Notes: generated from the letters alone by a model not told the origin. Positions 9,169 through 62,948 are shown, counted from the whole stretch's first letter. The stretch: DNA of 62,948 bases, filler included, from Octopus bimaculoides (GCF_001194135.2; 5 parts of 5 records of this genome joined end to end with filler, not necessarily neighbours in it), one strand, 5' to 3'. Numbers and translations: made by a program.

Positions 9169-9233
<65 letters not shown>

Positions 9234-9729: not shown

Positions 9730-11802
9730 TCTATACTATAAAAGGCAAATTTTCTCTGAGTGTGTGTGTATGTTTAAAATTCATACATTTACACAATTCC
9801 AAATTTCTTCAATTAAACAATCGCAATTAATATTCTAAATACAATTTGTTAGGTCACTGCGTCATTTTTTTCACTCCAAAAATTTCCTAATAATGAATAA
9901 AATCCATAAAACTATGGAAGTAAACATTTTCTCCCTACTAAAATCTAATTTCCTCTTTCTAATACAAATCCTTTCAACTCCTACTTTCTCTCATGAACCT
10001 TTACGAAAACTCCAACAACAAATACAAAAAGAAAGGAAGGAGAAAAAGAAAACTATCAAAACTGAAACAATCACATTTCGATACTGTAATGACAGATACT
10101 AAAACTACATACAAAATTAATTTGCCCCTCTAAAATTNNNNNNNNNNNNNNNNNNNNNNNNNNNNNNNNNNNNNNNNNNNNNNNNNNNNNNNNNNNNNNN
10201 NNNNNNNNNNNNNNNNNNNNNNNNNNNNNNNNNNNNNNNNNNNNNNNNNNNNNNNNNNNNNNNNNNNNNNNNNNNNNNNNNNNNNNNNNNNNNNNNNNNN
10301 NNNNNNNNNNNNNNNNNNNNNNNNNNNNNNNNNNNNNNNNNNNNNNNNNNNNNNNNNNNNNNNNNNNNNNNNNNNNNNNNNNNNNNNNNNNNNNNNNNNN
10401 NNNNNNNNNNNNNNNNNNNNNNNNNNNNNNNNNNNNNNNNNNNNNNNNNNNNNNNNNNNNNNNNNNNNNNNNNNNNNNNNNNNNNNNNNNNNNNNNNNNN
10501 NNNNNNNNNNNNNNNNNNNNNNNNNNNNNNNNNNNNNNNNNNNNNNNNNNNNNNTTATTATTATTATTATTTATTTATTATTATTATTATTATTTTTAAT
10601 TTTTCCCACAACGGCGGCTTCGGGCAGGTGGAGAATAGTCGATTATATTGACCCCTTTGTTCAACTGGTACTTATGTTTTAGACCCCGAAAGGATGAAAG
10701 GCAAAGTCAACTTCGGCGGAATTTGAACTCACACACTCATACATACAAATATCTGTCATTCTCTTCCAAATATGATCGACAGACAAACATTTATTCCTTA
10801 CAAACTGAATTTTTTTAATATCTTTCTTAAAACGCATTTACTTACTACCATATATAGACACAGAATACACATTAATACATACATACATACAAATACCTGT
10901 CATTTTTTTTATTTAGTGTGTGTGTGTCTTGCCCATCTTAATATATAATGCTGAAGTTCTGTACTTACTAATATTTTTTTATTTAGTGTGTATGTGTGTG
11001 TGTGTTGCCCATATATATATACACTTAAGACTTAGTTGTGGGTTGATCTGCACAGGTCATTATTATTATTATTCAGATTAACACCCACACGATTTTCACT
11101 AGGGTGTTAGGGTTACGGTTTTTGGGTCAGGGTTATGGTTTTAGGGTTACGATGAGGGTTAGTCTTACGGTTACGGTTTTAGGGTTAGGGTTATGTAATC
11201 GTGCGGGTGTTAATCTGAAAAATCACCGAAATGTGAAAACTACCGACCCTCCCATCTGTTATAACTTTTGTTGTTCTGTTGAATATGTACATAGATTATG
11301 CATCCAAACAAGAGAGCTTGCTGGGGAAAGAAACCAACCGGTTTAAAAAGACAGCAATAGACTGCAGCAATTCACCACATTCCAGAAGTTACTTTGAACA
11401 TAATGCAAAACGGTGCATCATCATCTACTGCCCAATCTGATAGAATTCTGGCAGAACTGTGTAGCAACAGATCGCCAGCAATTGCTTCATCGGAAATTGC
11501 CGTCCTACCTCCTGCGAAAAGGAATTACCCTGCTATGTATAATCAAGGCAGCGCAAAAAGTTGTTTTGCACAAGCATTTGTATAGCCAATTAGACGGATG
11601 AAATTTACGTACACTTAATAATGTTACGCAAAACAGCCTTCAGACTTTCCCTATTAATTTCGTCTTTTGAATTATGAACATATTTACATCATAAGGGTTT
11701 TTTCATTGTAAGGCTTTCTTTTTTAGTTGATTTTCACCTAGCAAGACTTATCGTAGATGGCGTAATAAGTCACACCCGGACAACGTCGGGTTATACTGCT
11801 AG
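9730..11802 (+). mobile_element. Non-autonomous Helitron
   Basis: A|TCTATACTATAAAAGGC 5' end, hairpin ACCCGGACAACGTCGGGT at 11774-11791, CTAG|T 3' end, no TSD. Confidence 0.8.
10605..10730 (-). mobile_element. SINE with Deu/Nin-like core nested in the Helitron
   Basis: GCCTTTCATCCTTTCGGGGTC...GTACCAGTT core on the minus strand. Confidence 0.75.
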
Positions 11803-12244
11803 TACAGAATAAAAGAAGAATAAGATCCACCTTTTCTATTGTCAATACAAGCACACACGACAGCAACTATAAGTTGATGTTTGAGGTACAACATTTCAGT
11901 CATCACATGTCAAACTACTGCACAACTTGCTGTGTCCTTCCATCCATTCAAACAGTACTGTAGTAGTCTCTTCTCTCAGTTTGTGAATTGTATGTCACTT
12001 TCACCTAAATCTACTTATGACAATCACCCCTTATTCTATAATTAAAATGCTAACTTTCTACCCATAATTTGACCATCATTCTTATGTAGAACCACATTTC
12101 TTTCACAATATTACACTTTCCAAGTTTTTACTTTCAACTGTTAACATGTCACCTTGTTATCTCTAACTGTTTGACTGTGATTCTGAATGAACACAACAAC
12201 TCCTTTGTTTAACAAATATGTAAAATATTAGTTCGGTTACTTAC

Positions 12245-12403
12245 TTTCATTAACTGGTAAACTGTGATATCATATTGGCAAACTTTCTTCACTGAAGTTG
12301 GAAATAAGGCATCATGTAGCCGAGGGTAGTGAAGTAGGCTATCTTCAAGAAGATTCATGTCGATTCCTTGGAATATATCAGGAACAGTGGAGCTGGCAGT
12401 CAT
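12245..12403 (-). CDS. spg11: Spatacsin exon (MTASS...IDMNLLEDSLLHYPRLHDALFP...DITVYQLMK)
   Basis: Resembles human VDPQLLKMALTPYPKLKTALFP...DITIYHLIQ. Phase 0/0. Confidence 0.95.
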
Positions 12404-12599
12404 CTGAAAAATGTTATTACAGAGAACAAAGTGCATATAGAATTAGATTCCCTTCAACGTATAAAGACGATAAACGTCACCCTTTCAAAGCCTAGCCAGG
12501 CTCATGGGCCTGGTTTCCCGGTTTCTATGGCGTATGTGCTTCCCCCAGCTGGACAGGATGCCAGTCCATCGCAGTGTTACTCAAGAAACAGGAAGAAAG

Positions 12600-13610
12600 A
12601 GTGAGAGAAAGTTGGGGCGAAAGAGTACAACAGTTATCTCTGAGACGAGCAAAAGGACAGTGTCTAAGGCCCTCTTGCAGACCATCTCGAGCACAAATGG
12701 CATCAACCACATTATTACAGATAATGACTTTAATGGTCATGTTGGCTAGCACAATGATTGCTGTTGCAGCATACATGGAGGCTACGGAAATAGTACATGA
12801 AATGTCAATTGATCAAGGCTCTAAGAATTTTTTGTGATGCAAAATGATCTAACCATCTGTAACACTAACTTCAGAAAAAAACTAACCAATCATTTGATCA
12901 CCTTCTAATCAGGCAAATACACAAGTCAGATACTTTTAATAGCCATGAGGAAATGGAGTAGACAAATGATTGCAACTAGAATGTCTTCCCCAAGATAAAT
13001 GTACCATCCCACATGGAATAGTGATTAGTGAGTTCAGAGTAACAGCTCAAAGACACAAGTCCACCTGGAAGAGGAAAGTGCAGAAACTGAAAGAACCCTT
13101 TGATAAGCTTAAGTTCAGAGAGGTCTTGGTGATACATATGGTAAGAAAGATTGGATGGAAACCACTAATATAGAAGACAGCAGTGCACTAATCATCACCA
13201 ATCTTGAAAAAGGTTCGGAAATGTTACTACAAGAAATTATTGAACAAGAAGAATGTATGAGAGAAGAAAGGGCAATCCCAAATAGATCCCACAGAGAAAC
13301 CAGTTACTGAAGTTGACAGTTATATAGTCAAAAGTTCAGATGCAGACTTGAAAACAGGGAAAGCAGCAAGATCATTGGATATGTCAATGAGACGCTGGAA
13401 TTATTTGGTGATGTAAGGCTCAACCTTGTCACTCACATAGTCAACTAGGGAGTACAGAAAGGTGTCAAATCCAATAATTGCTAAAAAAGGCTGATCTCAA
13501 GAGGCTTCATCTATCATATGCTGAATGTCTTGCTTCCCTGGGCATGGACACATTAAAGCTCTGACGTCTGGCAACTGATTTGGTAGACTCCCACAAGATC
13601 ATCCAACACC
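12600..13610 (+). mobile_element. RTE LINE endonuclease-region relic
   Basis: DFNGHVG, HGGYG, ICNTNFRK, HLITF motifs, with stops and frameshifts. Confidence 0.8.
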
Positions 13611-13889
13611 TTTCCAACAACAACCTTGGGCACCTTTTTGAATGTGTACATGTGTCATATGTGTGTATATGTATTGTGGTTCTGTGAGACGTATGTACCT
13701 ATGGTTGTGTATTGCTGTGTATGTATTTGTAGACGTTTGTGTACTTGCATGTGTGTGAGTATCTGCATAGGATTAGATAAGAGAGAACACATACATACAC
13801 AAAAGGAAAGAGAGAGAGAGAGAATGGGAGGGGGAGGAGAGAGAAAGAGAAAGAGAAGGGGAGGGGTATCTGAAAGGAAGACAAGGTTT

Positions 13890-14130
13890 TACATCAGACC
13901 ATCTTGGAATGCTGCAACTCCTTCAGCATCAAATCTCCTATAGTCAAGCATCAACATTGCTGGACTGACCACCATTTCATCAGGATGTGCCCCTTCCATC
14001 AAGATAAGCACCAAACAAGGCATGCTGCAGCTAGATTGTCCCCAACATCCATCTCATCGGTTCCTTGTCTCACCTGTGGAAAATTCTGCTGCTTGGCTTT
14101 TGGTCTCCACTCGCATTAGTGTGTTCACCA
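13890..14130 (+). mobile_element. RTE LINE C-terminal zinc-finger relic
   Basis: CLTCGKFCCLAFGLHSH resembles the C..C...F....GL.SH end of RTE ORFs. Confidence 0.55.
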
Positions 14131-14380
14131 ACTGCATTTGGCACCAACTTGAAGGAATGTTGTCATCTTCAGGCTGACAGGATCTTCAAGCTAAGCCATC
14201 TCTTCTCTCGCCACTATGACCCTATAATTCTCCTTCAATGATCCTATCTAAATCCTCATCAACTTCATCTATTTTTGCTTTTACATGTTACCTTTCCTTC
14301 ACACTTTCCAGTTATACTCACATTTATATTGTAGGATAGCCCACATTAGATTTGCTAGAACAGATCTGTTCCCACACACA

Positions 14381-14428
<48 letters not shown>

Positions 14429-14584
14429 AATTAAGTATAAGTTTATTAATCATGTTAATTGCGTAAAATCCTGAAGAAGGCAGGAATGCACATATTTCCC
14501 TTATAGGTACATGAAATTTGTATAAAACATTTTTAAGATAATTGATATGGTAAAAAAAAAATTATATAATAAAGAAAGCCATAC

Positions 14585-14730
14585 TGAGGTTAACAGGTCA
14601 TTGCCATAAAGAATAGTTGCTAAGGCAGCTAAAACATGACCTTCTTGGATGAGGTCAGTAACTGATGGTTCCTTCAAGTTCCAAACAACTGCAGCATTGG
14701 ACAAGCTAGCTTCATAAATGGGGCTGGTGT
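14585..14730 (-). CDS. spg11: Spatacsin exon (TSPIYEASLSNA...QEGHVLAALATILYGNDLLTS)
   Basis: Resembles human PKLIFQASLANA...LEGHTLLALATTMY. Phase 1 to 0. Confidence 0.95.
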
Positions 14731-15236
14731 CTGCCAAACAAGAAAAATCATTAGAATTAGTTAAATAATGATCTACATACAACTTAAACATGTGCATAAT
14801 AGTGTACCAACATACACTTCATTTTGTGAAGTATAGAAATGGAGATTAATGATTTAGGAAAAGGATATCTCTAAAATATTTATAGCTGGTCTTTCTTTCA
14901 TTTTCCAAAGCAATTTTACAACTATCTGCATACGATCCCTCGATATTTTTCTCCTGTCTACCTAAGAGAGCAATTCAAATTAAGCACAACAGAAATCTCG
15001 CTTTCTTTCTGTTAGTTATAATCATGTTTCTAACATGACATATTTGAAAGAAAAGCTATTCCATATTTATATGTAGCGTGTGCATGTGTGTATGTGTGTG
15101 TGCACACATGCATGCTCATGTGTGTGATGAGAAATCATTTAATGCCCTTGTGAAAGACAAAAGTGTCACAACTTTTCCTATATGTTAGAAGAACCATAAT
15201 ATCTAATGCATAAATTATATACTGAAGCAATTAACT

Positions 15237-17350
15237 TGTAGTAACGCCGTGCGCATGCGTGTTCTCACGCATGCGTGGAATTAAACAACCAAGCGTTCCC
15301 GCTTCTATTCTAGCTCTTTCTCGGCCGGCCGGCCATGAGCATGGACGTGTCAAGCAGTGTCTCCAACATTCCAACTCTGGAGAGTCTCTTTACGTGTTTA
15401 GCTGTCTCTCTCCATCTTTCAGACTTACGCTCGACAGCTCGCTTACATCTACATAACAACGTCCCAACAACAAAGCTCACACACACAGAAGCTGTAACAA
15501 CAAACAAGAGCTAAAGATGTATATATTTACCACCTGAATAAATGTTGTTTAAGTTGATAGTCTGGAATTCAGCGTTCCGTTATATTCGTAATTTTATATA
15601 GGAAAATCAGGACTACATCTAATGATGTATAACCAAGTTTCCTATAAAGTGGTGACCCCGACGTGATTCGAACACGCAGCCCGCTGAGCTGCAATAACCC
15701 ACTTTCTACTCAAGTGGTGACCCCGACGAAGAAACAAACGCAGCATGGACTCTGGACTACCAACTTATAACTGGTGAACCCGACTAAAGAACAAATGCGA
15801 CCATGGAGACTGAACTACTAACCAGCATCATCGTCATGACCAACACGATTCTACGATTACTACGCCACCAACATCTCCAACCATAGTCAACACGACTTAC
15901 TACGTATTACCAACATCAACAAGCGCGGTTTTTATCTCGCCTCTGTTAGAGTGGGTGTTTCCACTCACGATAAACAGACAAGAATNNNNNNNNNNNNNNN
16001 NNNNNNNNNNNNNNNNNNNNNNNNNNNNNNNNNNNNNNNNNNNNNNNNNNNNNNNNNNNNNNNNNNNNNNNNNNNNNNNNNNNNNNNNNNNNNNNNNNNN
16101 NNNNNNNNNNNNNNNNNNNNNNNNNNNNNNNNNNNNNNNNNNNNNNNNNNNNNNNNNNNNNNNNNNNNNNNNNNNNNNNNNNNNNNNNNNNNNNNNNNNN
16201 NNNNNNNNNNNNNNNNNNNNNNNNNNNNNNNNNNNNNNNNNNNNNNNNNNNNNNNNNNNNNNNNNNNNNNNNNNNNNNNNNNNNNNNNNNNNNNNNNNNN
16301 NNNNNNNNNNNNNNNNNNNNNNNNNNNNNNNNNNNNNNNNNNNNNNNNNNNNNNNNNNNNNNNNNNNNNNNNNNNNNNNNNNNNNNNNNNNNNNNNNNNN
16401 NNNNNNNNNNNNNNNNNNNNNNNNNNNNNNNNNNNNNNNNNNNNNNNNNNNNNNNNNNNNNNNNNNNNNNNNNNNNNNNNNNNNNNNNNNNNNNNNNNNN
16501 NNNNNNNNNNNNNNNNNNNNNNNNNNNNNNNNNNNNNNNNNNNNNNNNNNNNNNNNNNNNNNNNNNNNNNNNNNNNNNNNNNNNNNNNNNNNNNNNNNNN
16601 NNNNNNNNNNNNNNNNNNNNNNNNNNNNNNNNNNNNNNNNNNNNNNNNNNNNNNNNNNNNNNNNNNNNNNNNNNNNNNNNNNNNNNNNNNNNNNNNNNNN
16701 NNNNNNNNNNNNNNNNNNNNNNNNNNNNNNNNNNNNNNNNNNNNNNNNNNNNNNNNNNNNNNNNNNNNNTTCATTTGTACATTGCATGCATGTATCACAC
16801 AAGTGTACATTTCATTTCTTTCATTTTTCTTTGTGTGCGTTTTGTGCTACATCTTGTGGGTGGTTTTCAGTGGCCATCCTGCCTCAGGCGTTCTAACAGA
16901 TTTCATATTATCGTGCATTTTTGCACTGGCAAGGGAGCCCTGTAGTAACGCTGTGCGCATGCGTAGTCTCACGCATGCGTGGAATTAAACAACCAAGCGT
17001 TCCCGCTTCTATTCTAGCTCTTTCTCGGTTGGCCGGCCATGAGCATGGACGTGTCAAGCAGTGTCTCCAACATTCCAACTCTGGAGAGTCTCTTTATGTG
17101 TTTAGCTGTCTGTCTCCATCTTTCGGACTTACGCTCGACAGCTCGCTTACATCTACATAACAACGTCCCAACAACAAAACTCACACACACAGAAGCTGTA
17201 ACAACAAACAAGAGCTAAAGATGTATATATTTACCACCTGAATAAATGTTGTTTAAGTTGATAGTCTAGAGTTCAGCGTTCCGTTATATTCGTAATTTTA
17301 TATAGGAAAGTCAGGACTACATCTAATGATGTATAACCAAGTTTCCTATA
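15237..17350 (+). mobile_element. LTR retroelement: LTRs 15237-15646 and 16941-17350, TSD AACT, tRNA-Trp PBS at 15650, purine tract before the 3' LTR
   Basis: Two 410-bp repeats with 12 mismatches (hand count), AACT on both flanks, TGGTGACCCCGACGTGAT 3 nt after the 5' LTR. The interior is mostly N. Confidence 0.92.
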
Positions 17351-17528
17351 AACTGAACTAATAAATTTTTAAATGAATTTACTAGATTCCTAAATTACAG
17401 TATGCAAACATTATTGACAATTAAATTACAGCTATAAATACAAATCAAAATTTTTTTTAGTTCATCAATAATCTATTTGTACTGATGCTCTGCATGAATC
17501 TATTACGTTATAAAATCTATCAACTCAC

Positions 17529-17629
17529 CATAAGGGTTTATAGATAAAGCATAAAAGCTGTTGAACATCTTCATCCACATGTCTTCGTTACTCTCAAAGT
17601 ATTGCAAAGATAATTGCTTGGGGCTAATC
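17529..17629 (-). CDS. spg11: Spatacsin exon (ISPKQLSLQYFESNEDMWMKMFNSFYALSINPY)
   Basis: TTTTAG acceptor and G|GTGAGT donor. Phase 2 to 1 links its neighbours. Confidence 0.88.
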
Positions 17630-18463
17630 CTAAAAGAAAAGAAAATATCAATGAGCATTTCTAATTAAAAAAAAAATTACATTAATAATAATGGGCACTT
17701 TTATAAATGTCAGATATTATTAATATCTTTTGGCAAGTTTTTGTAGGTGTGCAATATTGATGGTGCTCAACTTTGCTATATCATTTATATTTATTGAATT
17801 CTAGAAATGAAAAACAAAGTTGATTTCAAAAGGATTTGATCTCAGAACATTTAAATATCAATAGACCCACTATGAAGCTCTCATAAAGAATCTGTGCTCA
17901 TATAGCATATATAACGGAAGTCCTGAGTACAACTCAGTGCTACAAAGGAAGTAAATATTTATCTTACAGTGCTGCTGCTGCTAATAGCAGCGGTGGGTTA
18001 TTCCTACAAGGAAGCTTAAATTTACAACTGGATAAATTGTAGAATTTGAGGGTCACTGTCTTCACTGAAGACACTAAGTGTAGCTTTCAAAATACAAAAC
18101 AGTTCAGATACTTTGTCTTATACATTATCAACTTGCTTATCTTCAATGTGAGAATCAGGTATAATGAAATGAAATTCTCAGATCCATTGCTCCAGATCAA
18201 TCATCTTCCACGATTCTAAAAGGATCATACCATGTGTGCTCTCAGACAGAACGTTTCACTTTAGGAGTGCACAGTGTGGCATTTTGGACTTGCTGCATTT
18301 TCTTCATCATTCATGCTATTCTATAAGTCTACACAGAATTTAGTAACCTTAGAGAAAAAATGTGAAACAGTGTAGCTAACCTCCAACTTTGCAGTAGATA
18401 AAGGAAAGGAAGGTGAGAGAAAAAGCAAAACTATTTTGTCAAAGTAAACAACAGGCTGCATAC

Positions 18464-18676
18464 TTATGAATCTGGCAGTATTTCCACAGCAGATAACCAA
18501 AGTTGTTCTTGGTACAATAAGCAATCATATCTTGGTGGAATTGGCGTAATTCTATGGAACATGTTTTCACTTCAGTTATTGGGGAAGGAAGTTTTAAAAC
18601 ACCTTTTAAGTGGTTCAATAAATGAAGGAACATTGCAAAATTGTGAGTCAATAGTGAAGGATCCAGAATTCCGTTT
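18464..18676 (-). CDS. spg11: Spatacsin exon (NGILDPSLL...FHQDMIAYCTKNNFGYLLWKYCQIH)
   Basis: Phase 2/2. Resembles human NGVF...FHSQFILYCLEHSLQHLL. Confidence 0.92.
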
Positions 18677-19080
18677 CTGAGCAAAGAAAAATTAAAACAG
18701 TTTATGCATAAAAACAGCAAGTAACACTGAAAAAAGAAATTACAATTCTACACTCAAACCCATGTTTTATACTGCTTCAATAAGAGGTTCCCAACTTGGA
18801 AGATAAACCTTCACTTACCATCAGCATGCAGAAAAGGGGCAAAGAGAGTGAGATACATCTTAAGAATTGGCTAATGTTGTGGATCATTGTTTAGTGCAGG
18901 GTTACTTCTCAGATCCTGCACTAAACATATTCTCTCAGTGAAAACCCCACTTAAACTTTCTGCCAATGTATCTCCTTCAATTACTAACTTACTGACAACA
19001 ATTTAAATAAAGCATATTTACCAACAGTGGCTATTGTTGCTCCTTAGAATAACAATTTGATACTAAATAGACAAAGTCAT

Positions 19081-19296
19081 TATCATCATCATCATTGTTT
19101 AACGTCCGCTTTCCATGCTAGCATGGGTTGGACGATTTGACTGAGGACTGGTGAAACCGGATGGCAACACCAGGCTCCAATCTGATCTGGCAGAGTTTCT
19201 ACAGCTGGATGCCCTTCCTAACGCCAACCACTCAGAGAGAGTAGTGGGTGCTTTTACGTGCCACCGGCACGAGGGCCAGTCAGGCGGTCCTGGCAG
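19081..19296 (-). mobile_element. RTE LINE/SINE 3' tail
   Basis: Reverse complement of the ...GGAAAGCGGACGTTAAAC(GAT)n tail family. Confidence 0.8.
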
Positions 19297-29971: not shown

Positions 29972-31137
29972 CTGGATAAAATTCAGTTAAGGACTACAAG
30001 GAAAAATTTTCCTGTGTTGTAAAACAAAAAAAAATTTTTAACAAGCTGCTTTTTTTCTTACTTGTTTCAGTGATTTGACTGCAGCCATTTTTTTTTTTTT
30101 TTTCAGTACCAAAACATATTTATGCTGAAGGAGTCGACTAACTAGTTCAACTTGATATTTTTGAAGCACGTGACATAATGGTAAATTGTATTTTGTTTTG
30201 CTGTGTCATTACATATATTGTTGAAGTTTATTATTTTGTAACAGAAATTTGGCTTTTAATCTCAACTTAAGCTTACAAACTTGTATACTTAAAATTTTGT
30301 TCCTTTCTCTCTCTACTTATCAATCATCCCACCCAGTTCTCCATTTTACACAGGCTTGCTCAAACATACATCTGCCACTTGAATTTTGACTTTTGTTGAA
30401 AGATATGGAAGTTGACTTAAACGTGAGCTGTGTATGTTGGTTTTTACTTCCAATCTTTTCACCTGCCCACTTCACCATTAACTACTGGAAATCTCTCCTA
30501 GTAACTAAGAGACCATCAGCCTTCCTTTGAGACAGTCATTGTTGACTTAATACTTACATACACATCATATACCTTGGACTGCTAACACCTACTAGCTGAG
30601 GCTGTACACACAGTAGTGGTAATGAGTGCAGTTATGGTAATAACTGGTAAAGCTTTGGGATGTAAGTTAATGATAGCAAATCAAATGAAAGAAGGACTAA
30701 TATAACTATGTGCGCAAATTTTGAAACTGTTGGCAATCTACACAGACGTCTTTCTTTTTTAATGGTGCAGAACTGAAACAGCAACTAATAAAATTACTAC
30801 CTGAAATTCTCCTCTTCCTGTCACCATATGACTGAAAACCACCACTTAGCTGTTATTTCTACATTTCTGAACTTCCTTGCATAGATTACTTCATTCAACT
30901 AAATTCTACATTTTGATTATGTTTCATCAACAACCAATAAATAAAATATATTTTTATGTAGTAAATATATAGTTCTTAAATTTATTCTTCTTCTTTGTAA
31001 GAATTCTTCTAATAATATGCATGCAGCCATTTCAATACTTGATACTGAACGTATATTCTACACTACACCTTCCTATGCCAGTGCCATGGTAAGAGCCCCC
31101 CCCNNNNNNNNNNACTGATAAGGTAAGCAAGTAAAAA

Positions 31138-52284: not shown

Positions 52285-52948
52285 NNNNNNNNNNNNNNNN
52301 NNNNNNNNNNNNNNNNNNNNNNNNNNNNTTAATTAATTAANNNNNNNNNNNNNNNNNNNNNNNNNNNNNNNNNNNNNNNNNNNNGAACACTGGGGTCGAT
52401 GTAATCGACTCATCGCCACCTGCCCCCCAAAGCTGCCCTTGTGACAAAAATTTGAAATACATATATATACATATATATATGTTGACACCAGAAAGGAACA
52501 ATTATGAACTTTTCTTTTAATTACATTTTTTAAAATATGTATTTTTGATAAGGTTCGTTTTTTCAAGAACCGAAACATGTTAAATATCTCTGAGAAAATT
52601 ATAAATTAAAATTCATTTTTTATATATTGGCGTTTTCAAACTTCTTTTTTATAAACATATATATATATAGGGAGAGAATTCACGAACAAAAAAAAATAGG
52701 GAGCGATCCTCTCAATTGATTCCTCTGAAATTCAGATTACCATTGTCTGCTCCAAAAACTTAGTACTTAATCTATCGTTTCTTTTGCAGAGAAGCTAAGT
52801 TGCGGCTACGTAAAAAAAGACCAGCACCGTTTTACGAGCGGTGGGGCTGGAACAACACACAAACACGCACGCGCACACACAAACACGCACGCGCACACAC
52901 AAACACGCGCGCGCACACAAACACGCACGCGCACACACAAACACATAG

Positions 52949-53106
52949 CGGGTTTCTTTCAGTTTCCACCTACCTCACTCGCAAGGCATCAGTCGATCCA
53001 TTGCTATTGTAGAAGACGCTTTCCTAAGATGCCGCGCAGTGGGACTGAACCGGAAAACGCGCGGTTGCAAAGCGAGTTTCTTAACCATGCTGCCATTCCT
53101 GTGCCT
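52949..53106 (-). mobile_element. Family B SINE 5' half
   Basis: Head and GGAAACTGAAAGAAACCCG on the minus strand. Confidence 0.7.
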
Positions 53107-53229
53107 GATATGATGCAAAATGCATATTACACTGAACGCATAATGAGTGAATACGTACACGTCGTCGTGGCCACTGAACCTGCCAGAAATAGCAAGTAAT
53201 TATCCACAAACTGCTCAATATTGTCTTTA

Positions 53230-53410
53230 AAACGTGGTCATTTTATATTGGAGAACCTTCTGTCCAATCACCCTGCTGTTGATCGAACTCAAACAGGTAT
53301 GGTTGCCTATTTGATGAAAGGCAAGGACCTCACTTTGTACCACGAGGTTTTATGTTCAACCATTTTGTACAACAACTTAGACAAGTATATCCTCCGTTTG
53401 GCTCAAATGA
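53230..53410 (+). mobile_element. Very old maT HTH relic (copy belonging to unit E)
   Basis: LMKGKDL...LYNNLDKYILRLAQM aligns weakly to maT HTH/linker relics at 57790-58300 and 61160-61235, at the same position relative to the exon. Confidence 0.4.
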
Positions 53411-53598
53411 CCGAACATTTTCCTTGATTTTGGTATTTTGAGAGATAGAGAATAAGTAAAAATCCATATAAAAGTGGTACGTGATAAAACTGAGTCACAA
53501 TAATAACGAATCTAAAATATCTCACAGAAAAGGATAACTACAGCTTCTTTGCTATAAGAAATATAGATTTACAAAATACAAAGCTAAAAAAAACTTAC

Positions 53599-53700
53599 TT
53601 CTAGGAGTGCACACAAGTCCATATTCCTGACAGAGGCAAGTCATATGAGGCTTCTCAATTGTGATTCCGACACCGTATTGTATTCCGTCCATGATACATT
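53599..53700 (-). CDS. 4-Cys module gene, exon E (CIMDGIQYGVGITIEKPHMTCLCQEYGLVCTPR)
   Basis: TAG acceptor, GTAAGT donor, 102 nt, phase 1/1, C-x19-CxC-x6-C. Its flanks are a more diverged copy of the same unit. Confidence 0.85.
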
Positions 53701-54184
53701 CTATAACCGAAGCAAAGTGACACATTTAGATTTGATAGATTAGAAAATACCAGTTGATGCACAATGTTATATTTAGAAGCAGTAAAGCGTCTAATTGCTG
53801 CAGTGACATGGGAATTCTAAATCACAACTGTGTAAGGGATCACCCAAATAGTTTACCAAGGTTGAGACATAAATAGAGAGTAGTGGCTATAGACATAAAT
53901 TAGCAAATTATAGTCACAGGAAGAAGTGTAACCAATCAGTTAAAATATATATGAAACAAAAATGATATACACGACAAGCAACATTACAGTCTCCAAGCCA
54001 TTAATTGCGATTGAACACAAATGGACATAGTTGCGAACCGAAATCTTTATCCATCCCTCCCTCCATCCAGCCAGCCAGCCAGTCAGCCAGCCAGCCAACC
54101 AGCCATCCATCCATCCATACATACATACATACATGCATGCATACATACATCTTGGCCGTCCACTCGTGACCAAGGAAAACCATT

Positions 54185-54620
54185 GCTGACCTTCAGGAAC
54201 ATTGTGCGCTCTAGGACTAACTTATATTTTGCATTTGCGGCTCCGTTGGTGGCTAATGAGCCCAGCTCTTGACAATCATACACGACTGCGAACATTGCAC
54301 ACCAAGCTTTCCCCATTCATGCTGAATACGTGCTCTCTCAAAAGTGTCGATCCCCTCCTTAACCTGCTTCCTCCATCTTTGGCGATGACAGACATTGTTC
54401 TCCCAGTCAGTGTCCTGCATATCACAGGCCTTTACTGAGGACTTGACACAGTCCTTAAATCGCAGCCTTGGTTTCTGCTAGGGTCTCGTTCCATTCACAA
54501 GTTCCCCATATATCATCTGCTTAGGAATCCTGCTATCCTTCATTCTAATAAGGTGTCCAGTCCAACGTAACCGGTGCTTGTGCACCATTGCCTCAATACT
54601 CAACATATCAGCTGTCCTCA
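54185..54620 (-). mobile_element. RTE LINE 3' end
   Basis: SIEAMVHKHRLRWTGHLIRMKDSRIPKQMIYGEL..G.R, RLRFKD, SRAGLISH. Confidence 0.9.
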
Positions 54621-54624
54621 GATA

Positions 54625-55605
54625 GCCACTCTTGCTAGCAGCACAGATGATACAAAAGTCTCTCAGAGGATACAGAACCTTGGAGACGTTGTGCATCTGA
54701 AACGGAAGTTGAACGCAATATACAAGTGTGCTAAGGAAAATAAAATGCAGTTTAAGGTTGGAAAATTCCAAGCCCTGCGCTATCAATGAAAAGCAGACAG
54801 GATACACTGGACCAAGAGAGACTGCAATCTCTGAATCAAAAGGCGTGCACAACCTGGCCAATGACTCGAGTAATAAAGCATCTTTCTATAAGCATTTTTC
54901 TATGTTGGCAATTAAACGCAGACAATCGATTTTCCAGAAAGAGAGAACAATTAACTGTGATAGACATCAGGAGGACATTGATCCTCAGTCGATTGGATTA
55001 CTGCTTCCAACTGTGGTCGCCACACAGTTTAAAAATAACGACGGAACTCGATGCATACCAGCGAAGCTACACAAAAAAAATCATCTCAAGGTGACATGTC
55101 AGCCACTGGGAGAGATTGAAAAAGTTAAGGCTCTACTCCTTAGAACGAACGAAGGAAAGATATGCAGTGATATACAACTGGAAAATCCTAGAACTTGCAC
55201 CAGAATTTAGCACTGTCAGTTGCATTAACAGTCAAACGGGTCGCCACTGCTTAGTACTAAAAACCCTATTGCCATCAGGATACAGGACCAGATACTGCAA
55301 CAGAAGTTTCTGGGAACCCACAGCAGTATCAAGGGTTCACGGCTCTTCAATATCCTCCCAGAAAGCCTGAGAGACCTACATGGGGAGGAGGTAGGCGTCT
55401 TCAAAACTAGACTGTATCTCCTCCAGTCAAGAGTTCCGGGTGAACCTACCTCGAGGCAAGAAACGCAGATGAAGGTAACAACGTCAAACTCCCTCATTCA
55501 CCAAATGCCACACATCAGAGGAGGTTTAGTGAAAGTGTATCAAAGCAAACGGCAGTGCTAAAGCATGGCTTCAGCTCCCGAGCTGAAACTAGAAAAGGAA
55601 AAAGT
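54625..55605 (+). mobile_element. CR1-group LINE RT and 3' relic
   Basis: SS(T)DDTKV, ENKMQF...KFQALRY, SRLDYCFQLWSP, LKKLRLYSLER. Confidence 0.85.
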
Positions 55606-55611
55606 AAAGTG

Positions 55612-55689
<78 letters not shown>

Positions 55690-55696
55690 TGTGTGT

Positions 55697-55733
<37 letters not shown>

Positions 55734-56004
55734 CATGGACATTTGGGTAAGAATTTCACTTTCCACCACATGATTCTGTTCGATGGTCTTGCTCGCTAGC
55801 TTCAACAAATATATTCTTCAAGTGACTCCAGTTGACCAAAGTTATATTTGTTGATTTTCATAGACGGAGAATGTGCAGAAGTCCATATATAAATAGCAGT
55901 TAATAAAGTTGTATAACAACGATGATGAATCCGTTATGTCACATGGAAAAGAATAATCATAGCTTCGTTTATATAAGAAATACAGATTTAATAAACAAAC
56001 TTAC

Positions 56005-56121
56005 TATATTTCGCGCAGCATGATATAACTCCGTTTGGAAAGCATCGGCATTCCGAAAACGAATCTTTACTCACTAATGCTCCGACCGTGTACAAAGCAT
56101 TTTTATGCACACATACTTCAG
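56005..56121 (-). CDS. 4-Cys module gene, exon D (EVCVHKNALYTVGALVSKDSFSECRCFPNGVISCCAKY)
   Basis: TTCAG acceptor, GTAAGT donor, 117 nt, phase 1/1, C-x20-CxC-x7-CC. Confidence 0.85.
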
Positions 56122-56392
56122 CTGAATAATATCAAAATAATATATAGATTAGATAGATCAGAAATTAGTAGCTGATACCAATGTATTGTTAAGGTTAATC
56201 AAAGATGTTAGTGAACGTGGAGATATTTAAGGATTATTATATTTAAGGATCTTTCAACCTATTATAACAAATCATTGGCTCATACAGGTTTGAAGGAGGA
56301 ATTGTGGTATATTAAAATTATTTTGTATACATGTCTACGTTTAGAAATGTGTTTGCAGACTGTAAATTTGTGTGTATGTTTCTGTGTGTGTG

Positions 56393-56434
<42 letters not shown>

Positions 56435-56521
56435 GGTTTTTAAACTTTTAAATTTTCATATTCAAAATGTAAGTTCTTATGCTATATTGGTAACGGTTGC
56501 TACATCCTCTGGAAAAATTAT

Positions 56522-56564
<43 letters not shown>

Positions 56565-56762
56565 GTATGTATGTATGAATGTATGTATGTATATATGTAT
56601 GTATGCATGCATGTATATATATGTCTGTATGTATGTATGTATGTATGTATGTATGTATGTATGTATGTATGCATGTATGTATGTATGTATGTATGACNNN
56701 NNNNNNNNNNNNNNNNNNNNNNNNNNNNNNNNNNNNNNNNNNNNNNNNNNNNNNNNNNNNNN

Positions 56763-56803
<41 letters not shown>

Positions 56804-57559
56804 GTATGTATGTATGAATGTATGTATGTATATATGTATGTATGCATGCATGTATATATATGTCTGTATGTATGTATGTATGTATGTATGTATGTATGTA
56901 TGTATGTATGCATGTATGTATGTATGTATGTATGACTGTATGTATATTTATGTTCTTCCGCCCTTTGACCGGTCTTATTTTTCATCCTGCAGGGTGTCCA
57001 ACAATCAGCCCCCACCCCCACCCCGGCCTCATCAAGCCAGCTTGATGGGGTTGCCAGTTTAGTCGCCGATGCAGCTTGTACTGGGTTACATGTTATCCAA
57101 TGACGTAGACTAGATCTTTTCGACTTTATGTTGCCCGTGTTCAGAGAATGGGATTGGATTTGTGTAAATCGTTTTCCGACTATAAACAAAAAAAGCCAGG
57201 TATCGCACAGGTATCGCTCGAAAAAGAAAAACTCAGACCTAGCACAAAAATGGTTGGTTGCAACCTTCGCATTTGTGGGAATTTCGAGTAGAAGATGGCA
57301 ATACTCAAACACGGGTTTGTAGTCATAATGTATGTTTGTATGTATATCCATACACATACATGTGTGTACATGTATGCATATAGTTATAAATATGTGCACG
57401 CATGCGTGTTTGTGTATGCATGCGTGCATATATCGTTATGTATGTATGCAATCATGTGTATATTTATGTTTAGCATAAGCGAGGTGTTTCAAAATAATTT
57501 ATTACTTTCTTCAAACCTATTAAAAGGCTTCGATTTCGCTCAGATCAATTATGTAGGAT

Positions 57560-58635
57560 AAAACACTGACACAAGAAATGAAAATATATGCAGTCATTGT
57601 TGCCATGTGCGTAGAACACTGCGGTTTATAAGTAACCACCTTCATAATTTTGCAAGACTATTTTTTTGCTCAGTTCGGATGGAATTGCAAGTCTCTGATG
57701 AGAATGTTTTGCTTATATGAAGAGAAACAACATTCTAACTGTTCAAACACTATAATTACACCAGAAATCACGAATTGTGTCCCTTGATCACAGGAAATCA
57801 ATGAAGGCCATTACGAAAGATCGTCAGGTATCAGAGTGTAGACTATCAGAATTGAGGTGCAGGACATTCAATACNNNNNNNNNNNNNNNNNNNNNNNNNN
57901 NNNNNNNNNNNNNNNNNNNNNNNNNNNNNNNNNNNNNNNNNNNNNNNNNNNNNNNNNNNNNNNNNNNNNNNNNNNNNNNNNNNNNNNNNNNNNNNNNNNN
58001 NNNNNNNNNNNNNNNNNNNNNNNNNNNNNNCATAATTTTGCAAGACTATTTTTTTGCTCAGTTCGGATGGAATTGCAAGTCTCTGATGAGAATGTTTTGC
58101 TTATATGAAGAGAAACAACATTCTAACTGTTCAAACACTATAATTACACCAGAAATCACGAATTGTGTCCATTGATCACAGGAAATCAATGAAGGCCATT
58201 ACGAAAGATCGTCAGGTATCAGAGTGTAGACTATCAGAATTGAGGTGCAGGACATTCAATACACGTCGAATGCACAGAAGAGAGACCAATTCATGTTTGC
58301 AATGAGGAAGGAAAAACTTTCGATCTCTGTGAAGCAACTGCATAAAAAGTTTAAAACACGCTCACAAACATTCTTCCCTGAAGATTAAAACTTCAACCAA
58401 GACAAAGGTGTAACAGGTGAAATGCCAGACGGTTAATTACAGGTCCTTCTGATGTGCACAGAGTAATGTACACTGTGTTTCCAGGAATTGCAACGGCTTT
58501 ATGTGTGGTGAATAAGAAAGGTCATATATGCTGCCTCACGCCTTACTGCAGTATCATAGAATCAATGCTGATGAATACGTGGAGATGTTGAAGACAGTTA
58601 TTAAGCCCTGGCTGGATGAAGCATGCACGGAAAGG
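57560..58635 (+). mobile_element. Old maT transposase relic (with a gap-flank false duplication inside)
   Basis: EMKIYAVIVA, HTH, RDQFM, NFNQD, RINADEYVEML.TVIKPWLD. Partial copies at 60075-60215 and 60935-61240. Confidence 0.8.
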
Positions 58636-58788
58636 ACAAAATTTGAGATAACTAAAGTTTTGAGTGTCGATTTTGACAGATGGGGGAATGGGTTGACACT
58701 CGTATATAAATGGGAATTGATAAAGTTCTGTATTAGTGACAACGAATCTGTTATACTACACAGAATAGGATAATCACAACTTCGTTTA

Positions 58789-59677
58789 CAAGGTGTAGTC
58801 AAGAAGTATCCAACCTTGATTTTTTTTTTTGCATAAAATAATAATGCGTGAGCAAAATCCACATGGGTATTAGGTGGCCACGTCCTTCCTGAGCATGCGC
58901 AAAAAGTCTCGTATGTGTAGGTTGTGCTATTCGCCCATAGTGACGAGTTGAGTACAGACGTGAAGAATATGCTATGCGATTTTACTTTTTGAGTCAAGAT
59001 AACCGAGCACATTGAGCAAAGATGCTGTATCAAATTCTGGCAAAAACTTGGTGATACGCAAAACCAGACTCTCGAGAAGATTCAGAATGCCTTTGGATAT
59101 GATACTAGGGGGAAAACACAAATAAAGGAGTGGTACAACCGGTTCAAAAATGGCCACACCTCAGTGGACAGTGAGCCTCGTTGTGGTAGAACATCGACGA
59201 GAAGAAACGACGAAATGATTGCAAAGTTTCTTCATCACCTTCGTGAAACTATNNNNNNNNNNNNNNNNNNNNNNNNNNNNNNNNNNNNNNNNNNNNNNNN
59301 NNNNNNNNNNNNNNNNNNNNNNNNNNNNNNNNNNNNNNNNNNNNGTGAAGCAAAACACACCACTTGTTCGTCAGGCGTCCTGCTCCCCAGACTTAGCTCC
59401 GTGAGACTTTTGGCTATTCCCAAAGCTCAAAAAAAAAATACACTCAAAGGGAGAAGATTTGAGACAACAGAGGACACGAAGCAAAATTCTAAGGCACAGC
59501 TCTACAGCATCCCAAAAAGTGATTCCCAGAAATGTTTCCAGCAGTGGCAGGAACGCTGGCAGAAGTGTGAAGACTCTCAAGGCGAATACTTTGAAAGAGA
59601 GACTAAATCAAAATGGTGAGTTTTTAAATATTACTTGTTTTTTGGCCAAAGGTCGCATACGTTTTGACTACACTTCG
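58789..59677 (+). mobile_element. Internally deleted mariner (Mos1-type HTH, SPDLAP.DF) with TA duplication
   Basis: ~30-bp TIRs, EQRCCIKF...WYNRFKNG, SPDLAP*DFWLFPKLK. Removing it restores the conserved intron motif CTTCGTTTATATAAGAAA. Confidence 0.92.
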
Positions 59678-59712
59678 TATATAAGAAAAACAGGTTTAAT
59701 AAACAAACTTAC

Positions 59713-59823
59713 GTCGAAGATGGCAAGTAAAAGCTCCTGAATCAGTGCACTCGCAAATATAACCTCTGTCTTCAATCACTGTTCCGACCGCGAACTTACC
59801 GTTAAAGTATTGACACGTCTTAG
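59713..59823 (-). CDS. 4-Cys module gene, exon C (KTCQYFNGKFAVGTVIEDRGYICECTDSGAFTCHLR)
   Basis: TTTTTCAG acceptor, GTAAGT donor, 111 nt, phase 1/1, C-x19-CxC-x7-C. Confidence 0.85.
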
Positions 59824-59829
59824 CTGAAA

Positions 59830-60028
59830 AATATTAATTTCAAATTCTGATGTAAGTCCAGTAAGTTCGGGATGGGGTCTAGTCGATTACATCGACCCAA
59901 GTGCTCAACTGGTTAAAATTTTAGTCACTCCGATAGGATGGAAGACTAAGTCGACCTTGGCGGAAAATTTAACTCAAAATGCAAAGACGATTCTACCAGC
60001 TAACGATTCTATCAGCTCGCCGCTTTCT
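59830..60028 (-). mobile_element. Family C SINE immediately upstream of exon C
   Basis: Head GCGGCGAGCTG; core GTCGATGTAATCGAC; tail ends at the acceptor. Confidence 0.8.
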
Positions 60029-60398
60029 CTGCTGAATAATTTATTTAGTTTAGTGAAATCAGAAATTGTAATGGCTTTATGTGTGATGAATAACCAAGGT
60101 TATATATGCTGCCTCACATCTTTCTGTAGCATCATAGAATTAACGCTGCTGGATACGCTGAGGTGCTGGAGACAGTTGTTAAGCCCTGAATAGATGGGGC
60201 ACGCACGGAAAGGTTAAAATTCGAGTCGACCAAAGTTCTGAGTGTCGATTTTGGCAGACGAAGAATGTGTAGACGCCCATATATAAATAGCAATTAATAA
60301 AACTCCGTAGCAGTGATAAAGAATCTATTATGTCACACAGAACAGAATAATCATAACTTCGTTTATATACGAAATACAGATTTAATAAACAAACTTAC

Positions 60399-60509
60399 GC
60401 GGTACACGGCATATAATATTTCCTGTGCTTACGCACTTACATAGGAGACCGTCGTTTTCAATCACTTTTCCAGCCTCGAAGACAGTTCTGTCAAGAACAC
60501 ATTTCCCAG
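60399..60509 (-). CDS. 4-Cys module gene, exon B (GKCVLDRTVFEAGKVIENDGLLCKCVSTGNIICRVP)
   Basis: TTTTTCAG acceptor, GTAAGT donor, 111 nt, phase 1/1, C-x19-CxC-x7-C. Confidence 0.85.
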
Positions 60510-60515
60510 CTGAAA

Positions 60516-60737
60516 AATATTGATTTGAAATTTTGGTGTAAGTCCAGTAAGTTCGGAGGACAGGGTATAGTTGATTCCATCAACCCCAGTACTCAACTGG
60601 TTCTTATTTTAGCGACCCCGAAAGGATGAAAGGCCAAGTCGAACTTGGCGGAATTTGAACTTAGAACGTAAAGACGGATGAAATGCCGATAAGCATTTTG
60701 CCCAGTGTGCTCACAATTCTGCCAGCTCACCGCTTTC
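60516..60737 (-). mobile_element. Family C SINE immediately upstream of exon B
   Basis: Head GCGGTGAGCTGGCAGAA; core GCCTTTCATCCTTTCGGGGTC; same insertion point as the copy at 59830-60028. Confidence 0.85.
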
Positions 60738-61432
60738 TCAGTTGAATAATATTGAAATTAATATAATTTAGAGAAATCAGACATTTGTAGGTAATGCAAA
60801 TAGCTTGTTGATATTATTCTAAGATGTTAGTGAACATGCAGATAGCTCAGGATCATTCAACTTAATATAACAAAGCATTAGCTCATAGTAGTTTGAAGGA
60901 GGAATTGTGATATATATTATCAACAAGCGTCGGGTTAAGAGGAATAGACCCACCTATATTACCATGCAATACAGGTGTCTTAACGGTTATAGCCAAAAAC
61001 ATTTTTCGTTACTCAAGAAACATATAATTCGTATGAAATTGGAACACTTCTGGCAAGAATGTTTTAATTCTATCAAGAGAAAAAAAGCATTCTAAATGTT
61101 GGAACGCAAAAAGGACACCACAATTCATCATACGTGTTCAAATTATTATCTATGATGATCCTAGGAAATTAATGAGGGTCATCGAGAAAGATCATCAGGT
61201 GACGGAGTGGACTATCAAAAATATGGTGCACAACAACAGTAAGAAGATCAAAATCTGAGTCGTCCAAAGTTTGTAGAGTCGACTTTGGTAGATGGAAAAT
61301 GTGCAGAAGCCCATATATAAATAGCAATTGATAAAACTGGGTAGCAGTGATTATAAATCAGTTATGCCACACAGAACAAAATAATCATGGCTTCGTTTAT
61401 ATAAGAAATACAGATTTAATAAATAAACTTAC

Positions 61433-61546
61433 GTGGAGGAGAAATGCAGTTATAAGTTAGGTTCGAGTAGCAGTCGCAATGCCAAAGTGGATTACTGAGA
61501 TCATGGATCTTTCCCAACTTTTCTTCCAAAACTTCACAGCTCATCT
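61433..61546 (-). CDS. 4-Cys module gene, exon A (MSCEVLEEKLGKIHDLSNPLWHCDCYSNLTYNCISPP)
   Basis: TTCAG acceptor, GTAAGT donor, 114 nt open, phase 1/1, C-x19-CxC-x7-C, NLT sequon. Lies in a duplicated intron unit. Confidence 0.8.
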
Positions 61547-61914
61547 CTGAATAATGTGAAAATAATTTATAAATTAGACAGATCAGAAATAAGTAGCTGA
61601 TACAAATGTATTGTTAAGATTAATCTAAGGCGTAATTGAACGTGCAGATATTTAAGGATCATTCAATTTATTATAACAAAGCTTTAGCCCATAGTTGCAT
61701 GAAAGAGGAACTGTGATATATAATCTACAGGGTCGAGTAAAGACGAATAGATCTATGTATATTACTTGGTATAATCCACCATATAACACGGCAGTGACAA
61801 CAGTCATAGTCTAAAACATCACAGGTAATATAATGTCATTCTTCCACAACTTCTAATATTGCCCAAAGTATTGAGTCTTTAGACGTAGCTAAATTAACAA
61901 CTAATAATAATAAT

Positions 61915-61966
<52 letters not shown>

Positions 61967-62948
61967 GGAGGAGGAAAAGTAACTTAACCATGTCATGGAT
62001 CGACTATCGTAAGGCGCACGATATGATCCCACATTCTTGGATTATGAAATGTGTGAATCTATTTGGTATTGCATCGAATGTTGAGCGATTGCGTGGAAAA
62101 AGTATGGCGAATTAAAGGACGGACCTGACAGCATACGGAAGAAGTTTAAGGACAGTAGAAATTAGGAGGGGCATCTTCCAAATGGACTACCTGTCCCCAC
62201 TGATCTTTGTACTGTGCTTGATACCACTGACACTTATTCTGAGGAAAGCAAAAGCTGGGTATGTATTCAAAAGCCGCCATCAAAAAGTCAACCATTTATG
62301 GTAAAGATGAAGCCCAACTCAGTTCTCTCAATTAAGACTATGTCTGGCTTCCTATTCTCAATCTCATGGTCGCACTGTATCATAAAATCCCATAGGATCT
62401 TTGCATTTCTATTTTCGACAATGCCCTCAGGTTTTTGGTTGTACCAATTTTTTTCTCTGTCAAGTCCATACTTGTTGCAAAGTGTCCAGTGGACAAGCCT
62501 GGCTATATTGTCGTGGCGTCTCTTATATTCCTTCTGAGTTAGTGGCGTACATTGTCTGGTAACATGCCATACGGTTTCACCGTTTTGTTCACAGATTCTA
62601 CACTTATCACTTTCTGATGTGTTGTCTTTTCTGTATTTTACGTAGTTTGTTCTTAGCGCTTGCTCTTGGGCAGCACAGATTAGAGTCTCCGTTAACGGTT
62701 TTAGATACTTTTAGTCATCCACAGCGATCTTTTTTCTCTGTGTCTTGTCTTCAACATCCCTATGAAATTGTCCATGCATTCTTTTCTTTACCCACCTATT
62801 TTCAGTTTCATTCGTTTTCAATTTCTTGTATAGTGCTTTATCTTTGCAATCTTTCATCCTCTCGTTTTCAGCTGACAAGGTATGCGATAATGAAGAAAGA
62901 AAAGTCGATAGATATGACAGGTTATCTTGGGAAGTTAAGCAGTTGTGG
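61967..62948 (+). mobile_element. R4/Dong-like non-LTR element with an internal inversion
   Basis: Plus 61967-62320: RT (WIDY.KA.D..PHSW, IRRGIFQ.D.LSP). Minus 62321-62870: MHGQF...AAQEQAL...CRIC...H...C...RHDN...ILWDF...KPDIVL. Plus to the end: ADKVCDNEERKVDRY. Confidence 0.9.

Follow-up and report, generated by a model that had tools for sequence, protein, structure and literature searches.

How can the exons of a tandem array differ far more from one another than do the introns between them? The question arises in LOC106883955, an uncharacterised gene of Octopus bimaculoides, whose exons lie on the minus strand of the stretch of DNA analysed here (62,948 nt, consisting of five parts of the genome joined with filler; hereafter the window). 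An earlier note on this stretch had described, at 53420-61760, exons diverging much faster than their flanking introns and had ascribed this to strong diversifying selection. Here we report that the exons are the more diverged part in every comparison of modules, that several neutral markers indicate exons no older than their introns, and that the codons between the conserved cysteines appear to have changed several-fold faster than neutral sequence.

Modules and introns of LOC106883955

Positions 52385-62948 of the window are part of chromosome CM046627.1 in the O. bimaculoides assembly GCA_001194135.2 (100% identical) and correspond to positions 8597-19160 of the sequence L001 in reverse orientation, with runs of N at both ends. 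They contain five consecutive exons of one annotated gene, each a symmetric phase 1-1 unit of 102-117 nt with canonical AG/GT sites that encodes one module of ~37 amino acids with four cysteines. Exon m5 (61433-61546, minus strand, as are the others; 114 nt) encodes (E)MSCEVLEEKLGKIHDLSNPLWHCDCYSNLTYNCISPP, has AG/GT sites and an open frame and matches the protein XP_014790598.1, the annotated coding sequence beginning at an ATG inside it. The others are m4 (60399-60509; 111 nt; GKCVLDRTVFEAGKVIENDGLLCKCVSTGNIICRVP), m3 (59713-59823; 111 nt; KTCQYFNGKFAVGTVIEDRGYICECTDSGAFTCHLR), m2 (56005-56121; 117 nt; EVCVHKNALYTVGALVSKDSFSECRCFPNGVISCCAKY) and the most divergent unit, m1 (53599-53700; 102 nt; CIMDGIQYGVGITIEKPHMTCLCQEYGLVCTPR). 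The earlier note had lettered m5, m4, m3 and m2 as A, B, C and D; m1 is a fifth module. For m2, two AG acceptors separated by 6 nt (ttcag|CTGAAG|TATG; 56110-56121) permit an exon of either 117 or 111 nt, both in frame, and the annotated protein takes the 117-nt form.

When spliced, the five exons correspond to residues 1-184 of XP_014790598.1 (197 amino acids) with 100% identity; UniProt's own label for this protein is 'VWFC domain-containing'. Two isoforms are annotated (197 and 200 amino acids), which differ solely in the acceptor of the last exon, and both contain all five modules in series. Every module follows the pattern C-x(18-20)-C-x-C-x(6-8)-C and has an aromatic-x-x-Gly hairpin, with nearly constant loop lengths. 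None of the exons m1-m5 contains a stop or a frameshift, as the earlier note had stated for m4 and m3. The note's description of a fixed Cys/Gly framework holds for C1, the glycine, CxC and C4, which are invariant across the modules, while the second glycine is missing from m5.

The sequence counts given in the earlier note were reproduced exactly. Over the 53 nt after the donor, m2 is identical to m4 and to m5 at 51 positions each, and m4 and m3 agree at 43 of the 47 nt before the acceptor, whereas the exons m4 and m3 share only 59 of 111 nt and 11 of 36 amino acids. Pairwise statistics were obtained for the 15 pairs of six intact modules. Identity in these pairs amounts to 5-11 of 33-37 amino acids, against 72-96% in the first 53 and 70-93% in the first 190 intron nucleotides, and in each of the 15 pairs the exon is more diverged than the intron, whichever flank is taken. 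Averaged over pairs, the difference amounts to 0.666 at variable exon positions (distance K ~1.6) versus 0.266 in the 200 nt of intron after the donor (K ~0.33), and none of 5000 equal-sized resamples of the intron columns gave a value above 0.33. Hence, the central observation of the earlier note, that divergence is far greater in the exons than in the introns flanking them, extends to all pairs. All exons, reading frames and compared stretches are free of assembly gaps, except that the donor-side intron of m3 was rejoined across a mariner-like insert.

The intron similarity also involves an inverted, tail-to-tail paralogue located in L001 outside the window, which consists of a pseudo-exon n1 (L001 31722-31827), an exon n2 (30444-30557), both on the minus strand of L001, and a tail exon. 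Exon n2 is intact, while n1 (106 nt) is frameshifted in its first half. The introns of the paralogue are 77-99% like those of m5, m4 and m3, its exons ~50%. Between m5 and n1, the upstream intron is 85-90% identical and the exon ~50%, and then, starting from the donor, ~470 nt are ~99% identical. Point substitution after joint duplication cannot produce such a donor-anchored tract, which must represent either conversion, ending where homology breaks down, or in part an assembly collapse. The flanks of n2 are mosaic, being nearest to m4 upstream and nearest to m3 downstream (93-97%). Judging from these alignments, intron homogenisation occurs and gene conversion explains some of the similarity between introns. 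A related coding versus noncoding contrast is repeated at the last exon (L001 23076-23244), which has an inverted copy at 27014-26858: the 3' untranslated regions are ~93% identical and the final 12-16 coding codons have diverged with indels.

Homology extends beyond the splice flanks, with whole units of 0.7-1 kb being collinear, introns included. On the donor side, the conserved intron blocks (all on the minus strand) are located at 60915-61432 for m5, at 60209-60398 for m4, at 55815-56004 for m2 and at 53409-53598 for m1, the latter 70-73% identical to the other blocks. The first ~190 nt of the m5 block are common to every unit, and the block is ~99% identical to the intron after n1. In m3, the first 35 nt of the block (59678-59712) are separated from the remainder, resuming at ~58482-58786, by the mariner-like insert. 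On the acceptor side (likewise minus strand), the block of m5 (61547-61722) belongs to a class, here called class I, that is common to m2 (56122-56312) and n1. The acceptor-side intron of m4 (60510-60916) comprises the functional acceptor copy (60510-60534), an insert resembling a short interspersed nuclear element (SINE) at ~60535-60732, a fossil exon start with the old acceptor (60733-60752) and then class I sequence; that of m3 (59824-60060) comprises the same SINE-like insert at ~59850-60032 followed by a fossil exon start plus acceptor at 60033-60052.

A 42-nt motif at the donor occurs five times in 33 kb, versus zero occurrences expected. Within the donor-side blocks the similarity is uneven: units differ on average by 0.136 per pair over the first 53 nt versus 0.32 beyond. 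The first 53 nt (61380-61432, 60346-60398 and 55952-56004) show about twice the conservation of the next 140 nt. This contrast suggests an intronic splicing element or another splice-signal constraint in the first ~50 nt, and this constraint probably accounts for another part of the intron similarity.

Age of the exons and cause of their divergence

Codon-based tests are of limited use at this distance. The NG86 proportions of synonymous (pS 0.52-0.79) and nonsynonymous differences (pN 0.47-0.69) are both saturated and the ratio of the nonsynonymous to the synonymous rate (dN/dS) therefore carries no information. Loop codons are 33%, 34% and 33% identical at positions 1, 2 and 3, close to the random expectation of 26-27%, and their fourfold degenerate sites are 38% identical. 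The randomisation of these fourfold sites was considered as an argument against selection and dropped as indecisive, because at saturation third positions turn into replacement sites as codons change boxes. Saturation alone could signify either very old exons or extreme turnover.

The first of these possibilities defines the rival account that survives best, although we regard it as rather unlikely. Here, the exons would be old and would have diverged at a normal pace, with purifying selection maintaining the framework, while the introns would look young through conversion or unequal crossing-over together with the donor-side constraint. It would explain why the ~99% intron tract stops at the donor beside an exon of ~50% identity, why the flanks are mosaic and exon and intron distances uncorrelated, why the NG86 dS ranges from 0.9 to infinite and why the first 53 intron nucleotides are twice as conserved as the remainder. 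What decides against it is the state of the neutral markers inside and next to the exons.

The first marker is the silent third positions of the invariant cysteine and glycine codons, which are 88% identical between modules (mean pairwise difference 0.111). This identity counts against old exons because conversion could not keep isolated codons alike within diverged sequence. With at most two changes in 35 lineage-sites, a per-lineage change probability of at least 0.3 is rejected (p = 5e-4). The second marker is the position-specific use of cysteine codons: C1 is TGT and C4 is TGC in seven of seven modules each (Fisher p = 6e-4), C2-C4 taken together are TGC in 18 of 21 cases versus TGT at C1 in all seven (Fisher p = 1e-4), and the framework glycine is GGA in 11 of 11. 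The third is the outgroup module m0, encoded further upstream, which is truly old, has introns unrelated to those of the m-units and TGT at every cysteine, and differs from the other modules at three of the four cysteine codons.

The fourth marker is the SINE-like insert, which is common to the acceptor-side introns of m4, m3 and n2, with further copies elsewhere in L001. Its target duplication of ~25 nt includes the former acceptor together with the initial 9 exon nucleotides, leaving a distal acceptor copy that is now dead (CAA in m4). From this fossil exon start next to the insert it follows that m4, m3 and n2 share one ancestral exon predating the insertion, which also counts against old exons. 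The body of the insert differs by ~16% between units, and the fossil copies of the exon start changed at 2 of 24 sites versus 9 of 24 in the live copies (one-sided p = 0.018). Taken together, the four markers indicate exons no older than the introns and a rate of change in loop codons several times that of neutral sequence (nominally ~5-13-fold).

We thus favour, at a probability of about one half, a reading of the locus as an array of young tandem units with hyperdivergent loop codons, in which gene conversion between introns is combined with constraint on the donor side. Tandem duplication of an exon-plus-intron unit of ~0.7-1 kb would have given rise to the array, part of which would have been recopied into the inverted paralogue. 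The codons between the framework Cys and Gly would then have been replaced to near saturation, faster than the neutral markers. The likeliest cause would be diversifying selection acting on the loops that a secreted binding protein of several modules exposes, and whole-segment replacement may have contributed. Meanwhile, gene conversion between units and paralogues would keep homogenising the introns, with conversion tracts ending where homology collapses, i.e. at the hyperdivergent exon. The first ~50 intron nucleotides would be under extra purifying selection, possibly because exons changing so fast cannot keep stable splicing enhancers.

For the claims of the earlier note this has mixed consequences. 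Accelerated evolution is borne out by the framework silent sites (pairwise difference 0.11) and by loops faster than the neutral markers; a dN/dS above 1, the sign of diversifying selection, does not emerge from saturated values. Of the explanations that the note had named as opposed to its own, gene conversion accounts for part of the intron similarity, as seen from the ~99% tract, the mosaic flanks and a Mantel r of 0.05, and functional constraint on the first ~50 nt probably accounts for another part; the exons still appear no older than the introns.

Several observations weigh against the reading that we favour. The assembly is based on short reads and gappy, and near-identical intron tracts could be partly collapsed. 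The homology searches returned no orthologue to compare, nothing exceeding ~32% identity. Identity of loop codons is uncorrelated with intron relatedness (Mantel r = 0.05; 319 of 720 permutations). The NG86 estimates (dN 0.73-1.9, dS 0.9 to infinite) give a ratio of ~0.6-1.5 that is meaningless at saturation. The neutral reference inside the exons consists of only six sites. The implied rate ratio of ~5-13 exceeds the values known for classic toxin families, and the intron K may therefore be deflated by conversion. Finally, the equal randomisation of codon positions and fourfold sites is matched equally well by selection and by a process of mutation or replacement.

This last point leads to a second rival, which we consider unlikely: mutation or recombination, and not selection, would drive the divergence. 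Inter-cysteine blocks would be replaced, as proposed under the names accelerated segment switch in exons (ASSET) and 'block substitution', or mutation would be locally raised, with the framework codons serving as anchors and selection only filtering for foldability. Besides the equal randomisation of all three codon positions and the fourfold sites, which is also expected after replacement saturation, the distribution of differences is in favour of it: in the closest trio of modules, codon columns 3-8, 21 and 26-27 are at 11-33% identity and adjoin columns at 78-100%, and the boundaries at the exon edges are sharp. A frameshifted pseudo-exon array lies nearby, and such processes have been proposed for toxin genes (PMC7285919, PMC3823881). 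However, no donor of a segment was found in the available 33 kb, and the near-constant loop lengths speak against sloppy replacement.

A more specific variant, for which we see only a slim chance, would be germline diversification of the loops by a dedicated mutational process, either templated block replacement from pseudo-exon arrays such as n1/n2 or targeted error-prone repair anchored on Cys/Gly codons. If true, it would make this a cephalopod diversity-generating locus inside one multi-module gene.

An assembly artefact, i.e. intron repeats collapsed or cross-filled by a short-read assembler next to correct, unique exons, is very unlikely, although the locus provides some material for it. 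Two gaps in the intron between m3 and m2 have duplicated flanks: the gap at 56698-56762 is bordered on both sides by an exact 174-nt duplicate (56524-56697 = 56763-56936) of microsatellite sequence, and the gap at 57875-58030 by a 232-nt duplicate with one mismatch (57643-57874 = 58031-58262). Both look like contig ends that overlap yet were left unmerged, and at both places the real sequence probably runs on without a break over a shorter distance than the scaffold shows. Moreover, a 129-nt stretch of 100% identity adjoins gaps at two places, and the m5-n1 tract is 99% identical. But identity is 70-93% in most intron pairs, whose numerous fixed differences and indels show that they were not collapsed, the pattern recurs on either flank and in all 15 pairs, and collapse itself needs high true similarity.

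A functional or mobile nature of the conserved intron blocks themselves, as an RNA gene, a duplex for editing or splice choice, or an intron-generating transposon that entered between exons already present, is highly improbable: the blocks do start exactly at GT and their donor-proximal 53 nt are extra conserved, but they have no Rfam match and only a weak consensus fold (-7.7 kcal/mol over 190 nt), the pre-mRNAs of the units fold no better than shuffles (z -1.4 and +0.5), no consistent exon-bridging inverted repeats were found, the exon edges lack target duplications, phase and position in the module are common to all introns, as duplication predicts, and the annotated mRNA holds all five exons, which are therefore not mutually exclusive. 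Three particular candidates were rejected on these grounds: an intron-generating transposon (no exon-edge target duplications, common phase and position, conserved framework silent sites), an RNA structure or editing duplex (weak fold, shuffle z-scores, no consistent pairing) and a Dscam-type cluster of mutually exclusive exons (five modules in both isoforms, no conserved pairing).

Predicted product and surrounding sequence

The annotated gene probably does not represent the whole transcription unit. An exon for a signal peptide (L001 69-123) and the module m0 (L001 2664-2802; 139 nt, phase 1-1, with extra Cys), both located upstream of an N gap of 4.3 kb, are annotated as a separate 65-amino-acid protein, A0A0L8I5R8. 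The phase of m0 is compatible with splicing into m5, and the gap has probably broken one gene model in two. Judged by this compatibility and by position, the product would most likely be secreted and consist of a chain of six or more modules resembling fibronectin type I (FnI) or VWC.

Profile searches place the modules close to these families. Pfam Fn1_2 (PF23003) was matched with 21.8 bits (E 2.2e-4), below the cut-off of 27. There was no profile match at E <=10 to VWC (PF00093), the modules having four and not ten cysteines, or to Pacifastin_I (PF05375). The six-Cys pattern of pacifastin is C-x(9-12)-C-N-x-C-x-C-x(2-3)-G-x(3-6)-C-T-x3-C, and two of these six cysteines are missing from the modules. 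In a sequence search of the PDB nothing was found below E 0.03, and fibronectin 2cg6 reached only E 0.09. An AlphaFold model, built from the single sequence and thus of moderate confidence, is all-beta, with a mean predicted local distance difference test score of 70.8 and values of 80-87 over m4 and m3. Its top Foldseek matches are pairs of fibronectin FnI domains (2.6e-6; 3cal_C with 32% identity; 2rl0_F with TMt 0.55), followed by the VWC domains of NELL and VWF. An FnI domain consists of ~40 amino acids with four cysteines in the order C...CxC...C and a fold of a two-stranded plus a three-stranded beta-sheet, and the cysteine pattern together with the predicted all-beta model agrees with this. 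With moderate confidence, therefore, the modules are predicted to carry an FnI/VWC-like fold.

The likeness to fibronectin type I and to the N-terminal VWC subdomain thus comprises the cysteine spacing, the aromatic-x-x-Gly hairpin, the predicted all-beta structure and the matches to FnI pairs, while the octopus protein differs in its sub-threshold score for Fn1_2, the missing VWC match and its four instead of ten cysteines. FnI is regarded as restricted to chordates, so the octopus module may be a case of convergence or a truncated VWC domain.

No homologue above ~32% identity was found in searches with the full protein, with the module profile and with the signal peptide plus m0 (word-indexed), or in an exhaustive HMMER search. 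Apart from products of the gene itself, the only matches were proteins from metagenomes and a fungus at ~30% identity. The metagenome relatives are VWC or pacifastin-type repeat proteins, the fungal ones repeat proteins in which Pfam recognises neither of these two domains; five of these seven distant relatives carry Pacifastin_I and VWC according to Pfam. A scan of metagenomes for the donor-side intron block likewise gave no match. The literature searched contains no mention of LOC106883955, and the searches found no functional homology pointing to venom, immunity or gametes, so that a role in any of these, as the earlier note had suggested, would be pure speculation. As an FnI/VWC-like repeat protein that is probably secreted, the product is a candidate for a rapidly co-evolving interaction.

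The remaining sequence of the locus consists largely of inserts and repeats. A mariner-like transposon (58787-59677, plus strand) with a TA target duplication is inserted 35 nt after the m3 donor, does not belong to the conserved unit, and encodes the Mos1 helix-turn-helix domain (HTH_48, E 7.6e-6). It measures only 891 nt including a gap of 92 N (59253-59344); either the gap size is underestimated or the element is internally deleted. The 129-nt stretch mentioned above belongs to this element and is 100% identical to sequence adjoining another gap (L001 29489-29617). Decayed retrotransposon-like frames were noticed by eye at 54150-55500, 61990-62290 (plus strand) and 62300-62948 (minus strand), with motifs of the types HRLRWTGHLIRM and IDYRKAHD; they contain stops and have no Pfam match at E <=0.01. 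Long microsatellites of the types (CA)n/(TG)n, (TA)n, (TGTA)n, (CCAG/CCAT)n and (ATA)n are located in the introns, at 52850-52950, 54060-54150, 55610-55735, 56380-56940, 57320-57470 and 61900-61965. Rfam yielded only spurious, far-sub-threshold microRNA-like matches, all in TG/TA microsatellites among these and none in the conserved blocks.

Comparison with known systems

The animal genes that evolve fastest, namely those for snake phospholipase A2 (PLA2), conotoxins and three-finger toxins, carry as their signature conserved introns around hypervariable exons with a cysteine framework. The parallel that the earlier note had drawn with conotoxin and snake PLA2 genes is apt as a pattern, and it extends to the conservation of cysteine codons and to equal divergence at the codon positions. 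Snake PLA2 genes, those of the habu included, show similar substitution rates at all three codon positions according to the summary of Ogawa 1992 and Nakashima 1993 in PMC7285919. The crotaline venom PLA2 isozyme genes resemble the octopus modules in these equal rates and in their retained cysteine framework. They differ in that paralogous genes with measurable KA >= KS are compared, whereas the octopus case concerns tandem exons of one gene plus an inverted paralogue with both rates saturated, and in that the octopus module has another fold and no known venom link.

Conotoxin introns are 84-99% alike within a superfamily, as reported in PMC3862624 and in PMC3823881 with reference to Conticello 2000. 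Site-specific preservation of the codons for cysteine is likewise described for conotoxins and ascribed to shared history plus constraint at the amino acid level (PMC3823881). Both systems are molluscan and have hypervariable inter-cysteine loops and an own conserved codon for each framework cysteine. A conotoxin gene, however, encodes one small peptide with a conserved signal and propeptide exon, whereas the octopus gene would string together up to six or more modules of one exon each, and no gene superfamily was found in our searches.

ASSET was put forward for three-finger toxin and serine protease genes (Doley 2008, 2009, as presented in PMC7285919). The likeness lies in short surface segments that are wholly different between close paralogues while framework and introns are alike; the difference is that no switched segment of the octopus locus was traced to a source, the ASSET mechanism itself being unproven. 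Domains of the pacifastin inhibitor type are among the protein types of coleoid venom glands (PMC4619613). The octopus gene shares with them the tandem arrangement of small cysteine-rich modules, and the domain is present in five of its seven distant relatives (~30% identity), but its modules lack two of the six cysteines and any Pacifastin_I match. Coleoid venom proteins were found mostly under purifying selection in published analyses (PMC4619613).

Whether selection alone or a special mutational or segment-switch mechanism lies behind the signature has been debated for ~30 years. What is new compared to the known cases is the occurrence in a cephalopod, in an FnI/VWC-like module, among tandem exons of a single gene and with built-in neutral controls. 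These controls, i.e. the introns, the shared SINE, the fossil exon start and the silent framework sites, are located within a few hundred bases of each test sequence. Given long-read genomes of several Octopus species, selection, gene conversion and block replacement could be told apart in this one compact locus.

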